Origin: Geosiphon pyriformis uo1
Taxonomy: Eukaryota; Fungi; Glomeromycota
Length of the DNA stretch: 64,000 bases
Direction of reading: 5' to 3'
NCBI GenBank assembly: GCA_016748015.1
Contig: JAAOMT010000046.1
Location: forward strand, 516,273-580,272
Made by a program: the position numbers and the translations under genes. The notes beneath the pieces are model-generated. The model saw nothing but the letters and a program-made list of their open reading frames with translations. It was not told the origin of the DNA and made no database searches. Position 1 is the first letter of the stretch, and every line of letters begins with the position of its first letter. This document shows, one piece after another, positions 6,657 to 64,000 of this stretch.

Positions 6657-7835
6657 AGTTAATAAGTAAAATCCAAAATTATTTAATTCAAAAAAATTAT
6701 TTTTATTTTTATTAATAATTAATAATTAAAATTCAACTATTATTTACTATAATATAATAAAAATATATATTTTAAAATAAATATTATTCAAGCCAATTAA
6801 AACTATATTATATATCAAAAAAAAATTTATTTATTTTTAAAACCAAATCAAATTAAATAAACTTTAAAAATATTTAATTTTATATAATTAAACTAAAAAC
6901 AACAATTACAAAATTATATATATATATATTAAACATTAAAATTTTAACATTGATAAAAAAAATTTTTTACTTAGTTTTTAATATTATATATTAATATTTA
7001 ATTATTATTTTTGTATTTAATTATTATTTTATAATAAAATTCAATTAATTTAAAATAAATAACTTTTACAATTTTAAAAATCATCAATAATTTTTTAAAT
7101 CAAGTTTTAATATAAAGTTTTTATATAAAATTATATAAAATAAATTATTTTTATTTGTATTATATAAAAACTAAACATAAAAATAATCAAATAAATAATT
7201 ATAAACAATTAATATTTTAATGTTAAAAGTTTTATATATAAAAATACATAATATTATTTAAATAAAAAATAACCAAAAAAATTTTATTATTATTAATTAA
7301 CCAATTAAATATTAAAATTATAAATAATATAATATTAAAAATATCAAAAAAGTTTCTAAAAATATTAAAATTACCAAGAATTTTAAGCATTTTAAAAATA
7401 TTAAAATAATTAAAAATAATATTTACCAATAAAAAAAAATTTAATAATTAAATAACTAAAAAACAAATCCCATTTTTATTTTTAAGTTAATATAATTTTA
7501 AATAAAATCATTATTTAAATTTATAAATTCAAAATATTATTATTATTATTATTATTAAATTTATTAATAATTATTTTATATTAACAAATATTAAAATTAT
7601 AATATCAATATCAATATTAATATTATTATTATTATTTATTAATTTATAAATAAAATTTAAATGCTATTTAATATTATATATCAAATTAAATAGTCTAAAT
7701 TAAATATAACCAGCTATTTAGACCAATAAAAACAATATTACATATTTATATTAATTAAAATAATATAATTAATATTAAAAAAAATATAGTTTTAGTAATA
7801 TTAAACAATTTTACTATATTATTTTTTTTTTATTA
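5950..7835. other. Extremely AT-rich, G-poor tract, probably a terminally mutated repeat relic; contains (TTA)n at 6607-6654
   Basis: Almost no G and nearly no CpG. No credible ORF. Lies at the gene/transposon border. Confidence 0.6.
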
Positions 7836-9090
7836 TGGTACAAATCATTTATAGTCATCAAACAATTTATATAATTTTAAATTGTATCTAGTCTTCCAAT
7901 TTTAATAATATTAAAAAACTAAATCATAAATATGTTAGATTAAGTTCTTCTCTTTCACATTTATAGTTTAATTTTTTGAATTATATTATAATTTATAAAG
8001 TTATTAAAGTTTAAAATTAGCCACTTTTATTATTAATCTTTAATTTTCGAATGCTGATCAATTAGATTTTAGCCAATCAACAATCACTAAAGTCACATTA
8101 CCACGTAATAAATTATTGAAGTATTATCATTTTCAGAAAGGCTTTCAATTAATATTAATCAAATCTTTAAATAGTCACTTTTTTATAAAGATATAATATC
8201 TCTCAGTCTGCATGTCTTCTGCTGGTGATATGGCACCATTAATCATGAATATTCTATTTACACCACTACTATATTTGGTTGTCATTATTGGAACAGAAAT
8301 CCAGATATCAATATTGTTTACACCAGGCGTCAAAGAAATCATAAAAGTACTATGAGCAATTGTTGGAGAATTTGGGAATGTTATTTGCACTCTATTTGTA
8401 ACCTTGTGTTATTATAATGTGGATATTTACTTTAAATTCACAAATAACCTTTCAATAACTATAATGTTGTATTTCAAAGAATTGCTTGGATCTAAGAGAT
8501 ATACAAAATCCCCTGTAATAAAGATTTCTGGTTAAATTTAATATTTAAATAATGAATTATACCAAAGAGAAATATAATGACTAAAATACCTATCATGTAT
8601 TCGACTGAATCATGATCTAGTTTTAAAATTGGTTTCCTAGGTTGTAAAAGGAATTTCGATTGTTGAATATTTCAACAACTTATTAGAATATGATATATAA
8701 TAGCTTATCACAATAATCAAGAAACTTACATCAGTTGGTGTTAATTTAGGGGAATCAGATTGGAATTGAAAGATCTTTGGCTTTATCTTGATTGAGAAAA
8801 CTGAAGTTGTTTTAAAGCCCATAATCTTGAATAGCTTTTTTTTGTTAGTGTTGTACATTTTTTAACGAGTTTGTTTTGATGCAAAAAATGTATGAAATGT
8901 ATTAGTTCAAGTAAATAAAATCCAGATTTTTTTGTAAAAGCCTAATAAACTTCTTATTTATAAATAATATATTAAAAACACATGTATATTAACCAATAAA
9001 ATTTAATTATATGAATAAAAACACATGAAGATTGTCATTTAAAATTTCGGACTGATTTACATTTTTGATGATTATAAATGGTTTGCACCA
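7836..9090. mobile_element. Non-autonomous TIR DNA transposon (1255 bp, TA TSD, Tc1/mariner-type ends) with captured gene fragments, copy 1
   Basis: Left TIR 7836-7862 TGGTACAAATCATTTATAGTCATCAAA versus reverse complement of 9064-9090 TGGTGCAAACCATTTATAATCATCAAA (24/27, all three mismatches transitions). TA on both flanks (7834-35, 9091-92). A second copy starts at 63439. Confidence 0.88.
8175..8641 (-). pseudogene. Captured fragment of an RSC1/RSC2/polybromo-like gene: BAH-domain N-terminus with intron, joined to a putative C-terminal beta-sandwich segment
   Basis: Splicing the GTATTT...TTACAG intron (8589-8513, phase 1) gives RKPILKLDHDSVEYMIG|DFVYLLDPSNSLKYNIIVIERLF, matching the BAH start motif Y-x-(V/I)-G-D-(W/Y/F)-V...I-(E/F)-R-L-(W/F). 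Downstream reads TISLTPGVNNIDIxVSVP...ERYYIFIKK. In-frame stops are present. Confidence 0.65.
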
Positions 9091-9100
9091 TACAAATTTT

Positions 9101-12100
9101 ATGAATGAAACCCAACTGCTATCTAGTACATAGAACCAAACTAAGTAAAACCAACTAAATGCAGTTCATGCACAGACTACATGTGGCCAGCCACTTGGAC
9201 CAGACAAGGCAACATTATGCACTTATGCTGACAAAAGCACCACCATCCAAACCAGAGAAAAATTGACACAATTTGTATCTACCAAACCTAATAGCAAAGG
9301 ATTCCATAATACCAAGTATACAAACAACACCAGCCGACAACCTAGAACCCATACTGCCAAACAAGCCAGAAACCAGACTATTATCCCCAACCAAGCTGGC
9401 TTTTTCCATATTTACCCTATGTTTGGCTCTAATAGACCATATCTTATTGTGATGTAACTTCACCAAAAACCTAACATATTCAACAAGGACTAGAACAGCT
9501 TCCTTTTTCCCCTCAAAAACTAAAACAGCTTCAGCATACTAATCTCCTATTACAAAACTCTTGCAAATTACTGTATAAAAACTCACATCCAAAAAACACA
9601 ATGAAAGTAAAAGCAGAATAGCAAATGTAAATGGACTTGAAAGACCAGACATTGACATCTATTTTTCAGTAACTTCAACCAAAATGTTTCCACAGAGACC
9701 AGAGTCATCAGAACAGGTAAAAACATGATTAAATAACTCCATCTTGCCACACATAAAGCACAACACCCCAAGATAACTCTTCTTATACAACTTTTTTCTA
9801 ATTGTAACCAGCAGCTATTTGTATACAGCCTTTATTAAATATGTGCACAGATTGGCTGATTTTCTACTGGTAAACCCAAACAGCATATATGAATCAGGGT
9901 GCCAAATTGCTGCAGTAGTCCTCCAATCTATTTCTCTAATCATAACATTTGAAACAATATCAAAACCCAGACCAGTCTCCCAATGGGCACAGCATATTAA
10001 CTGGTGTAAATCTCGAACAAAATAACAAGTATTGTCAGATACAGCAGATTTCTCAGCAATCATAAATCTTTTTCGAATTCCAACCGGCAAAGAAAAAGAT
10101 AAGGAAGTTGCCTCATTAACTAATACATCAATCTTAACATTGCCCACTACACCTGAATGCCCCTTAACCTTCACCTACTTAATTGAAATATTTTTATTCC
10201 TAAGAAAATTGTCTATATGCAATCTTTTGATCCAACATTGGTTACAGAAGTTAAGCATAGTAAGAGAAATCTCAGAAGTGCATGTATCAATCACAGATTA
10301 ACTATCTGAGTATAAAACCACTAAACATGAAGATGGAACACACTCTAAAGTCAATACTACAGTCTGCAATTCAGTTAAAATAGAGGACAAAAGCCCATTC
10401 ACTCTAATCTCAATACTCGCATCTGCAGCCGAAAAGTATGCAGCCATTTTACCTGCCACCTTAGCAAAACCAGCATATTGTAAGGATCTATCTGTATAAA
10501 CCTCAATACAATCAGACCACATCTCTAGTAAACTATCACAAACATCAGAAAATCTATCAGAATTTAAGACACTCAGCATATTCTTTCTCTTAGTAAAAGT
10601 AGTTCCAACTCCCAAAGAAACAGATTTGGTCATAAAATCAAATGTTAATGAAAACCAATGAGGCACTGAGCCTCTTAGATCCAACCACTTCCAACAATGA
10701 AATGTTTTCCAGTCTATCACCCTTCTATTTTTATCAAGAAGTCTGTCACCAAATACAATACCAAATCGTTTTAATGACAAAACAGATTTAAAATACAAGG
10801 ACTGATCTAAAATGTCAGATATTAGAAAGTTACCAAACTCACAAAAGACACAAGACAGATTGTTTGTTAATGACAACTCATTATTCAGAAAAATTTTCTC
10901 CACTCCAGCCAGAAAATTGTTTACAGAACTAACATGCAACCTGACTGAAAATTGTAAAGGATCCAAAGGAGCCCAGTCCAGAACTTGTAAATCCAAGAAT
11001 CTATAATTAAATAATCATCTCAGAATGCCACAGTTATTGAAGAATAAGATCAATAATGCCAGCTTCCCTTTAGACTGTACTTGCTCAAAGAGCTTTAAAC
11101 TATACAAAAAAGGATGGTGCAAGATCTCACTGAGAAAGTCATACAGCAAACCAGCTTTGGTCTTAAGACCTTTCCTAATCATAATGTCTCACTTACAACA
11201 CATAGCTAAAGAAACAAAACTGAATTGTGTATGATAACCAACTATGGACTACAAAACTGCTGACACCAAATAACAAAATTGTTTGTCTGTGATAGTCTTT
11301 CTTAACATTACATTAGAAAAAAACTTGATGTCTATATAAGCTTGAGCCAAACTGAATTTAGAGAGACCCTCAGTTGACAGAAATATGCCTAAATATTGGT
11401 GTGGCTCTCCCTTTTTAGCAATTGAAATTGGCAATCCATTGATCAACAGTGAGGCATTCTTAATTCCTTAATTGATTGAAATAACTACTGTTTTATCAAT
11501 ATTAATTGAGATGTCATTGATCATAAAAAATTCACATGCAATGTTCAAAATATACTGTATAGAAGCATGATTACTACTGATCCAAATTGTATCATCAACA
11601 AATAAACCAGCAGCTAAAAAAGAAGTTTTTCCTCTAATTGTCTTAATCCTGTCAGACTTAGCCACAAACTTAGAATCAATCCTGTATTCACATAAGTATT
11701 CATGTCTTTTTACCTCACACAGAAATAAGTCATAAAAGACCCTCCAAAGTAGCAAAGAGAAAACCTCCCCCTGATTCAACTTATTATGTACTCTGTAGCC
11801 TTCTGAGAGCCCAAAATCTGTTATCACTCTGTTGACCCAGTTCTCATGAATGTTACCAAAAAATTGGATGAAGTGTTTACACATTTTTATATGATATAAG
11901 CTTGCTCACAAATGATGCCAGCCTACTAAATTATAGGCTTTGTGCATATCTTGTAGTACTAACCAAAGCTCTCTGTTTTTCTCTAGAATATTTTCAACAA
12001 CCAAACCAATAACAAAAATAGGAGACTGGGTGGAAGTACTCTTCAACACTAAAAAATTGTTACCACAAAGAACATTAAACTTGCTATAAGCCAATGATAT

Positions 12101-61177: not shown

Positions 61178-63438
61178 CTGGCCACTAAGCTGAAGAAAAA
61201 AATTGAGAAATCTATCACAAAAGACTTGCACACCATTGAATTTCTGTTCATTATACAAAGAATTCCATCTAAAATCTTCAGATATTATCAACTATCATTA
61301 AATCCATTAAGCATTAAGTTATGAGTTTGTTATTTGCTTTGAGATCTTAAATAATCACTTGTAACACCACCCAGAAAGGAAACTATAAATTCAATGTTAT
61401 GCCTTTTAAACTCTGCAATATACCAGCAACTTTCCAGTGACTTATGGATGTTGTATATAAAGAATTTTTATGACAATTAATAATTGTCTATCTTAATAAT
61501 ATTAATATATACTCACCAAGCTTTAAAGCTCATCTTATTCATTTGCAAGAAGTTTTTCAATAATTACAGAAAGCAGGATTGAAGTTAAACATTGAAAAAT
61601 GTTATTTTGGAAAAACAAATTTAATTTTTTTTAGATACATTATTAATAAAAATAGAGTCAAACCAAATCTTAGAACAATCAGTGCTGTTAAAAACTTTCA
61701 AACTCCCAAAAATACCACAGAACTACAAAAATTTTCAGAAATTGCCAAACCATTCAATTATCTTACCAACAAAAATGTGCCATACTAATGGACTAAAGAA
61801 CAACAGAAAGTCTTTGAAACTCTTAAAACAAAATTGACAACAGCTTCAGTTTTTGCTTATCCAAACTTCAACAAATAGTTCTAACTAGTTATTGATGTCT
61901 TACACATAGCATTTGGTGCTATCTTATTACAATTAAATGAAAATGGCCAGGAACAAGTTATTGTTTATGCCAGTAGAACACTTAAACTAACAAAACTCAA
62001 ATATGGCTCAACTGAATTAGAAGCTGCTGTAGTTATTTGGGCTTTCAAACACTTTCAACAATATCTGAAGAATAGAAAAGAATTTGATATTATAATTAAC
62101 AACATTGGTCTCAAATGGCTCAATAAAAAAAAAACTAAAAAAAGTGCCAAACAGTTTCAATAAAATGACTTCCTTACAGACTACAAATATATTGTACATC
62201 ACAAACCAAGAAAACTACACACCAATGTTGATAGTCTTTCAAAAATAAGACAAAATTAACACCAATAACAACTCCACTACAACTTACCAACCTATTAACA
62301 AAAATAACCAAACAACAATAGATTTTAGAAATTACAACAACATCAAAAACTATTTGAAAACTTTTACCATGTCAAAAAATTGGTCTTCAAGTGAAAAAAA
62401 TCAATTACAACATTAATTAAAACAATATTTTATACATCACAACAAAATTTATTATAAAAATTGCAAAAATCCAAACCAACTACTTAAATTAGTACAAGAA
62501 AATAAAAAAGAAACAATTTTATACAACATGTATACAGATTTTTTTTTAGCACACTTGGAAAGAAATAGAACAATTCAAAGAACTCTTGAATATTATTTTT
62601 GGCCATACATGCAAAAAAACATTTAACAATACATAGAATCTTGTAATAGTTGTTAAAAAAAAAAGGAAACTCATTCCATAAAACCTCTAAATCCAATCAA
62701 AATTGGACAACTTTTTGACAGAGTTGAAATTAACTTAGTCAGACCATTACCTATTACAACTTATGAAAATTGTTATATTGTAGTTGTAGTAGATTATTTC
62801 ACTAAATGGCTTGAAGCTAGAGCCATCCAAAGAGCAAATGCAAAATCAGTAGCAAATTTTATCTATGAAGACATTATTTGTAGACATGAATATCCAATTG
62901 AACTTTTATCTAATCAAGAAATAAATTTTGTAAGCAACTTAATACAAGAAATTTGTAAACAATTTAATGTCAAAAGACCTCTATTATCACCTTATCACCC
63001 TCAAACAAATGGACTTGTAGAATATTTTAACAGAACATTGTGTGAATTTTTAGCCAAAATCTTAACAGATTTTGAGCAGAAATGAGATATATTTATTTTA
63101 TTAGTATTACTAACTTACAGAACACTAAAACAAGATATTACAAAACACACACTATTTGATCTTACTTATAAAAAAACAGCAATATTACCAATTAATTTTA
63201 CAGTAGAAACATACTCAATACAACCAATCAATAAAGAAAACTTTCAAAAAACACTTCAAAGAAGAGCCTACACTTTTCTTAGTACACTAAAAGAAAAAAA
63301 ACAAATAGCAGCTATTCATATTAAACATGCTCAAGCTTAACAAAAAGAAAGGCATAATAACAAATTGCTACCAGTTACTAATGAATTTAAAGTTGGAAAT
63401 AAAGTTCTCTTATACAGAACTAAGATTAAAAAACAATA

Positions 63439-64000
63439 TGGTACAGATTATTTATAGTCATCAAACAATTTATATAATTTTAAATTGTATCTAGTCTTCC
63501 AATTTTAATAATATTAAAAAATTAAACCGTAAATATGATAGATTAAGTTCTTCTCTTTCACATTTACGGTTTAATTTTTTGAATTATAATATATTTTATA
63601 AAGTTATTAAAGTTTAAAATTAGCCACTTTTATTATTAATCTTTAATTTTCGGATGCCGATCAATCAGATTTTAGCCAATCAGCAATCATTAAAGTCACG
63701 TTACCACGTGATAAATCATCAAAGTATTATCATTTTCAGAAAGGCTTTCAATTAATATTAATCTAATCTTTAGATGGTCACTTTTTTATAAAGATATAGT
63801 ATCTCTCGGCCTGCGTGTCTTCTGCTGGTGACACGGCACCATTAACCATGAATATTCCATTCACACCACCACCATATTCGGTTGTCATTATTGGAACAGA
63901 AACTCAGATATCAATATTGTTCACACCAGGCGTCAAAGAAATCGTAAAAGTACTATGAGCGATTGTCGGAGAATTTGGGAATGTCATTTGCGCTCTATTT
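63439..64000. mobile_element. Non-autonomous TIR element copy 2 (runs off window), inserted at TA in the Gypsy-A integrase
   Basis: Collinear without net indel with 7836-8397. Begins TA|TGGTACAGATTATTTATAGTCATCAAA exactly where the integrase (RTKIKKQ) stops. Confidence 0.92.

Follow-up and report, generated by a model that had tools for sequence, protein, structure and literature searches.

In all likelihood, the 1255-bp unit described here is a non-autonomous internal-deletion derivative of an IS630/Tc1/mariner cut-and-paste transposon that carries a captured piece of an Rsc1/2-like gene. It lies in the window, by which we mean the whole stretch of 64,000 nucleotides of Geosiphon pyriformis DNA that was analysed (C689:516273-580272). 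The features that bear on this reading are collected in Table 1.

Table 1. Features of the 1255-bp element, its cargo and the second family copy, in window coordinates.
Feature	Position	Strand	Basis or remark
1255-bp element	7836-9090		TIR-bounded, TA-flanked
Left TA target-site duplication	7834..7835	.	TA at both ends of the element
Left 27-bp terminal inverted repeat	7836..7862	+	Consensus matches, window and genome
77-codon open frame, 3' of the BAH exon	8178..8408	-	Translation; weak Pfam match in L002
82-nt exon, start of BAH, phase-1 intron before, phase-2 intron after	8431..8512	-	Pfam BAH, E 0.017; structure of L067
77-nt GT-AG intron	8513..8589	-	Same codon position as the host paralog intron
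BAH-leader exon (47 nt, assuming an acceptor at the AG of 8637-8638)	8590..8636	-	End aligns with the paralog exon end; 5' limit inferred
43-codon putative linker exon, then GTAAGT donor	8730..8858	-	Between bromodomain 2 and BAH; out of frame with the next exon
Deletion junction, 6-bp microhomology	8958..8963	.	Mapping of the element ends onto L031, L034 and L035
Right 27-bp terminal inverted repeat	9064..9090	-	Consensus matches, window and genome
Right TA target-site duplication	9091..9092	.	TA at both ends of the element
Ty3/Gypsy integrase frame split by the second copy	62400..63436	+	Integrase core motifs upstream
TA at the insertion site of the second copy	63437..63438	.	Integrase frame whole only with a single TA
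Left end of the 4352-bp long copy	63439..64000	+	Runs on past the window to L035:5063

Ends, target site and copies of the element

The element is bounded by two 27-bp terminal inverted repeats (TIRs), in which 24 of the 27 bases pair between the arms, and is flanked by TA on each side, as a first-pass annotation of this DNA had described. A 27-nt consensus of the repeat gave three matches in the window, against 0.00 expected, and 158-164 matches in the whole genome, against two for a reversed control. Of the copies extracted, 17 of 18 short ones and 3/3 long ones have TA at each end, the flanks being otherwise unrelated. The exception is the short copy L019, with AA on its left; apart from this site, the TIR and TA ends of the other copies match those of the window element. 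No transposase open reading frame was found in 7836-9090, in agreement with the earlier description. The unit at 7836-9090 is confirmed as a non-autonomous, TIR-bounded, TA-targeting element devoid of transposase.

The first-pass annotation had asked for a count of the copies: the family comprises about 80 elements genome-wide. In a nucleotide search of the 128-Mb genome with the whole element, for which the best 40 of 199 candidates were scored, about 19 of the scored copies matched the full 1-1255 bp and about 20 matched element positions 1-1128 only, after which a different sequence follows. The 1255-bp form is present at no fewer than 18 other sites (L002-L019). Adjoining the window copy, open frames of 119, 232 and 138 codons with RNase H- and reverse transcriptase-like motifs were observed at 9815-11884 on the minus strand; they probably belong to a non-LTR retroelement.

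The second copy and the interrupted integrase

A second copy starts at 63439 with the same first base as the element at 7836-9090 and interrupts a Ty3/Gypsy integrase; both points had been noted before and both were seen. The interrupted integrase frame picks up again after L035:5063 and is continuous only if one TA is kept. That the frame is whole with exactly one TA supports a duplication of TA at the target site and not a repeat that itself ends in TA. The integrase frame is decayed, with several stops.

The copy at 63439 had been taken to mean that the 1255-bp unit moved in one piece. Being a long form of 4352 bp, this copy does not carry that conclusion, which is sustained by the 18 other short copies. 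Transposase reading frames are found on the plus strand of the long copy; over its left 562 bp, it shares 97.9% identity with the short master L002, at a GC content of 29.5%. It is the least-decayed transposase-bearing copy found, stretches of L035:1274-4779 being read as N, and it is a candidate for the autonomous source.

The short form is an internal deletion of the long form

Several longer copies share their right terminus with the short form (L031, 4187 bp; L034, 4268 bp; L035:712-5063, 4352 bp). Positions 1-1128 and 1123-1255 of the element were mapped to L031:174-1301 and L031:4228-4358, respectively, and the same mapping was obtained in L034 and L035. Since its two parts correspond to the two termini of the long form, the 1255-bp unit is an internal-deletion derivative, by about 3.1 kb, of a transposase-bearing 4-kb element. 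The left 1128 bp and the right 133 bp of the 4.0-4.35-kb element have been retained in the short form, and the part missing at the junction, compared with the long elements, comprises bromodomain 2 and the whole transposase gene. The long transposase-bearing form, which has the same TIRs, is the autonomous partner for which the first-pass annotation had recommended a search.

A single microhomology-mediated deletion removed the bromodomain and the transposase to give the 1.25-kb form. This form has since reached at least 18 sites, and its arrival at five of these was very recent. To judge from family membership, the transposase of full-length relatives, such as the copy at 63439, would bind the 27-bp TIRs and excise the unit, and the excised unit would be inserted at a TA, which is duplicated in the process.

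One locus of the family, L044 (G000:C733:99442-102834), is rearranged and contains two family copies joined head-to-head, one of which ends at element position 574. A BAH-like match in L044 was rejected as due to chance: it concerns a stretch upstream of the transposase in this copy pair that is common to all long copies.

The transposase and its superfamily

In the long copy L038 (contig C683), the transposase is read in one frame devoid of introns. This frame spans about 620 codons, includes D, D and E motifs and is broken by five in-frame stops. With a 206-residue piece of the transposase, 1766 relatives were detected in a representative library. Relatives of full length have 620-690 residues, show 38-50% identity and match the Pfam family DDE_3, P0017 being the only one above the cut-off (37.3 bits against 28.6). 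The element's own transposase pieces gave no Pfam match, and a PDB search with the relative P0001 found nothing.

Two features of the IS630/Tc1/mariner superfamily were observed at the level of the DNA. First, TA is duplicated at the target site, as seen in the flanks and in the integrase frame restored with a single TA. Second, autonomous and non-autonomous copies have the same TIRs. Because the relatives match DDE_3 and TA is duplicated, the element probably belongs to the IS630/Tc1/mariner superfamily, an assignment that depends on the Pfam matches of the relatives and on the TA duplication. At this superfamily level, the former reading as a TA-targeting element of the Tc1/mariner kind is upheld. 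The distance between the second D and the E in the relatives, 123 residues in P0017 and 137 residues in P0001, lies far outside the 34-41 residues of classic Tc1/mariner elements and differs from the 82 residues of Sailor. With a spacing of this size, the element is therefore neither a classic Tc1/mariner nor a Sailor/DD82E element and is filed at superfamily level.

Relatives of the transposase were also found on two other contigs (L070 and L071), on which no neighbouring bromodomain or BAH gene was detected. No TIRs are visible inside L071, a short contig. On L070, an ENA metagenome contig of 32.5 kb, at least three more genes occur within 14 kb that have a faint DDE_3 match resembling that of the relative P0020, which is 39% identical to the element's transposase piece.

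A host-gene exon in the short element

The presence of a 77-nt GT-AG intron on the minus strand (8589-8513) was confirmed, and the exons flanking it read as the first-pass annotation had written the peptide across it. The same peptide had been assigned to the BAH domain. When the exons were searched separately in Pfam, and not as the joined spliced peptide, the exon at 8431-8512 alone matched BAH (PF01426) with 15.5 bits (E 0.017), against a cut-off of 30.8. A further search with this exon gave 12.7 bits (E 0.12), and in both cases only profile positions 6-33 were covered. The match is one to a fragment and not to a domain.

The exon alone stays below the threshold; it is assigned to the beginning of BAH on the strength of gene structure and of the other copies. 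In a host paralog on contig C663, the homologous exon (L067:1342-1423) is also 82 nt long and is enclosed by the same phase-1 and phase-2 introns, the phase-1 intron measuring 80 nt in L067 against 77 nt in the element at 7836-9090. In exon length and in both intron phases, the cargo agrees with a host BAH gene, and to this extent the earlier assignment stands. The BAH exon has matches at 77 places in the genome.

On the 3' side of the BAH exon, the 77-codon open frame gave a weak Pfam RSC4_Ig_like match (E 0.13) in its least-mutated copy (L002:1843-2073). For the window copy (8178-8408), no Pfam match was obtained. The frame has no relative in the PDB and no convincing one in the Atlas, and no Ig-like domain was found in the part of L067 that was examined. 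This frame may be the tail of the captured gene.

The cargo in long and older copies

In the long copies, a bromodomain fragment precedes the BAH exon by 720-730 bp and has the same orientation; it was detected in about 35 transposon copies. With 27.2 bits, the fragment in L020 passes the cut-off of 21.7. An intron separates it from the second half of the bromodomain. Two more intron positions, one inside the bromodomain and one at its end, are common to the long copies and the C663 paralog, so that four intron positions are shared by the cargo and the paralog, in addition to the 82-nt exon. The layout of the long copies is that of Rsc1/Rsc2, with the bromodomain upstream of BAH and collinear with the host gene, the bromodomain having been lost in the short element. 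Because the intron positions and the exon structure match those of the host paralog and a bromodomain lies upstream, the cargo of the long copies is shown to consist of bromodomain 2, the linker and the start of BAH of an Rsc1/2-type gene, taken up as genomic DNA. A capture at the DNA level, with the intron retained, of a piece of an RSC/polybromo-type gene had been proposed, and the intron and exon structure, being that of the host paralog, bears this out. The cargo is oriented head-to-head with the transposase, the start of which is about 380 bp from the side of the cargo.

Older and more decayed copies have longer left arms, in which the BAH exon lies 1130-3000 bp from the left TIR, against 595 bp here. 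Two of these, on C665 and C563, contain the remainder of BAH between the left TIR and the BAH exon. From this longer cargo, it follows that the founder held more of the gene, which was cut back later. The distances between the left TIR and the BAH exon fall into classes of about 336, 595, 1130, 1740-1800, 2035-2075, 2290, 2900 and 3020 bp; these classes could be a deletion series in the cargo or could result from nested insertions.

These results also bear on the view that there is no host-gene cargo at all and that the resemblance to BAH arose by chance in an open frame of AT-rich transposon DNA. Such a view would draw on the sub-threshold score of the single exon (E 0.017 and 0.12), but it leaves three observations without explanation: the agreement in exon length and in both intron phases with the host BAH gene, the significant bromodomain that precedes the exon in the long copies, and the remainder of BAH found in the older copies. 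Ruled out by the upstream bromodomain and the shared exon/intron structure, it retains a negligible probability.

For the captured gene piece, the copies show the following history. The founder of the family had taken up the 3' part of an Rsc1/2-like gene with its introns, from bromodomain 2 through BAH. The cargo extends further in the oldest copies, and later deletions trimmed it. The long copies with a transposase contain the same piece and a larger part of the gene. The capture therefore took place a single time, in the lineage that bears the transposase, and what the short element has inherited is a remainder. The first-pass annotation had called the element a Pack-type transposon. This term suits its present form (TIRs, TA duplication, no transposase, a piece of a host gene) and does not suit its origin, as the piece was inherited by deletion.

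A candidate source gene

Two Rsc1/2-like paralogs were observed in the genome, G000:C663:800399-801547 (L067) and G000:C728:296795-300326, with a difference of one intron in bromodomain 2. On one strand of C728, bromodomains are located at 300042-300326 and 297826-298119, a match to the BAH exon at 297319-297402 (68% identity to the window copy, E 6e-5, over 29 residues) and the rest of BAH at 296967-297119. Open frames of 329 and 88 codons are also present. From bromodomain 2 to the BAH exon, the distance is 711 bp in C728 and 720 bp in the transposon; from the BAH exon to BAH profile position 50, it is 289 bp in C728 and 280 bp in the C563 copy. Furthermore, a single intron would fit into bromodomain 2 of C728, which is also the number in the cargo, whereas that of the C663 paralog has two. 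In C728, no exact match to a degenerate left-TIR pattern and no transposase match were found, nor was there any match to the 123-codon segment, specific to the transposon, that borders on the bromodomain in all long copies. Judging from coordinates and from one 29-residue match, from which the breakpoints and the direction of transfer are also deduced, C728 would be a host Rsc1/2-like gene and the likeliest and closest candidate source of the cargo.

Two nucleotide searches for the parent, with the whole element and with the bromodomain region of L038, gave only transposon copies among the matches scored (the best 40 of 199 and the best 40 of 64, respectively); they are no evidence for or against a nucleotide similarity of C728. 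The first-pass annotation had foreseen a parent gene with the same intron; in the C663 paralog, an 80-nt intron is present at the same codon position.

It is unlikely, though not to be neglected, that C728 is not the source, either because the cargo came from another paralog or another species, the element arriving already loaded, or because C728 is itself a transposon relic. The BAH exon of C728 is just 68% identical at the protein level, which is low for a direct and recent parent. In addition, C728 is absent among the nucleotide matches scored (best 40 of 199 and best 40 of 64), and the stops reported inside its bromodomain matches could reflect decay and not introns. However, C728 contains a first bromodomain that is absent from all transposon copies, together with the two open frames, and it is devoid of the transposon-specific segment, of the transposase and of the left TIR. 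Its spacings also agree with those of the cargo within 9 bp, and its bromodomain 2 has room for a single intron, as the cargo does. We therefore retain C728 as the best candidate for the source.

Age and decay of the copies

Among the short copies, L002-L006, which occupy five different loci, share 98.9-99.6% identity and have a GC content of 29%. This likeness, together with the nearly unmutated 4.35-kb copy at 63439, suggests that the family was mobile very recently, and it may still be active. The short copies form a star-like pattern around a master sequence. Apart from L002-L006, the short copies differ from this master almost exclusively by C>T/G>A changes: the window copy contains 59 of them, one other transition and one transversion, and in the comparison of the window element with L002-L019 there were 45-119 such changes per copy against 0-6 transversions. 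Changes were found at 47% of CpG sites against 14-20% for other contexts (CpH), on both strands. The copies are shown to undergo inactivation one by one through C>T/G>A hypermutation with a preference for CpG. In this Glomeromycotan genome, the process is either RIP-like or driven by methylation.

The same decay is visible in the transposase. All five in-frame stops of L038:615-2475 (minus strand) are TAG, TGA or TAA, and at the three stop positions compared, the relatives have Trp or Arg. The residues found at these positions indicate that transition decay makes TGA or TAG at conserved Trp and Arg codons. Such C>T/G>A decay could mimic a recoding of TGA as Trp, and caution is called for when transposons of this genome are read as evidence of an alternative code.

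The cargo looks like a passenger

Inside bromodomain 2, one nucleotide has been lost from a T-run in 9/9 long-copy loci examined. By comparison with the bromodomain consensus and the paralog, not with the true parent, this loss splits the second half of the bromodomain into two frames. In the near-unmutated short masters, stops and an out-of-frame exon join are found upstream of the BAH exon. The frame mismatch of the linker exon at 8730-8858 persists in these masters, and this exon was therefore treated as decayed cargo. No stop was found in any of the 77 matches of the BAH exon (0/77), an observation that is uninformative because, in the window copy and in L002, the exon has no codon that C>T or G>A turns into a stop. 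On account of the shared frame break and of the stops in near-unmutated masters, the cargo looks like a passenger.

The opposite reading would make the bromodomain-BAH gene a working, or recently working, second gene of the transposon, encoding a chromatin reader that guides integration or counters silencing from a chimeric frame starting in transposon-specific sequence. The cargo is indeed retained in every family class, including the least-decayed transposase-bearing copies, and its head-to-head arrangement about 380 bp from the transposase start would suit a second gene. In L038, moreover, an ATG-containing frame of 123 codons runs into the beginning of bromodomain 2, and this frame is open in several otherwise decayed copies. 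Against this stand the frame break common to the nine long-copy loci, the loss of most of BAH from the active 4.35-kb lineage, and the stops and out-of-frame exon joins in near-unmutated masters. The stop-free BAH exon lends no weight, for want of convertible codons, and the transposase relatives on the two other contigs are without such a neighbour gene. We consider a functional second gene very improbable. A variant of this idea has an equally slight chance of being correct: the module of the founder would have been an expressed, transposon-encoded chromatin reader, a chimeric second gene driven from the shared 380-bp region that steered integration towards particular chromatin or shielded the element from it, and the present copies would be relics of this two-gene transposon.

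It had been suggested that silencing of the element could also affect the host gene. Such cross-silencing appears unlikely, since the BAH exon of the closest host gene shows no more than 68% protein identity and this gene is absent among the nucleotide matches scored.

Discussion

Cut-and-paste transposons that capture pieces of host genes are well known among the Mutator, CACTA, hAT and Helitron elements, for the most part those of plants. In a literature search that was not exhaustive, no case of gene capture by a TA-targeting element of IS630/Tc1/mariner type was found. The present family offers a clear case of this type in Geosiphon pyriformis, an early-diverging symbiotic fungus, and its history can be read from the copies: capture by an autonomous element, stepwise trimming of the cargo, and then the origin of a non-autonomous 1.25-kb derivative that spread recently. 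As gene captures go, the case is genuine but fairly ordinary, with no sign that the cargo works or affects the host gene.

The short form resembles the internal-deletion or MITE-like derivatives of autonomous DNA transposons, of which Ds, derived from Ac, is an example. As in these derivatives, its termini are identical to those of the long element, its interior was lost at a short microhomology and it was amplified to many copies; there is no difference of substance.

With the Sailor/DD82E elements, and with the IS630/Tc1/mariner superfamily generally, the present element has in common the TA target, the short TIRs and a transposase with D, D and E motifs, the relatives of which match DDE_3. 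The fungal Sailor elements are, as here, several kb long (PMC8533490). However, a TATA duplication is reported for most Sailor elements, against TA here (PMC8533490), and the relatives of the present transposase have a D-E spacing of 123-137 residues with a Cys-rich insert, in place of 34-41 or 82 residues.

A chromatin-related host gene amplified by a fungal cut-and-paste element, the copies of which decay as they do here, is also known from Pyrenophora, where the transposon-borne gene is histone H3-like (PMC3538342, PMC6710886). There, the whole gene was amplified, whereas the present cargo is limited to the 3' part of a gene and its frame was broken already in the founder. The superfamily differs as well, the Pyrenophora carrier reportedly belonging to hAT.

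Finally, the plant Pack-TYPE elements (Pack-MULE, Pack-CACTA) share with the present element a transposase-less unit bounded by TIRs, a target-site duplication and an intron-containing host fragment (PMC6379663, PMC8903248). They are mobilised in trans, as the 1255-bp unit would be (PMC6379663, PMC8903248). In contrast to Pack-TYPE elements, the fragment was not acquired here by the non-autonomous element but was inherited from an autonomous-type progenitor; it is one fragment of one gene, carried by a TA-targeting IS630/Tc1/mariner element in a fungal host.
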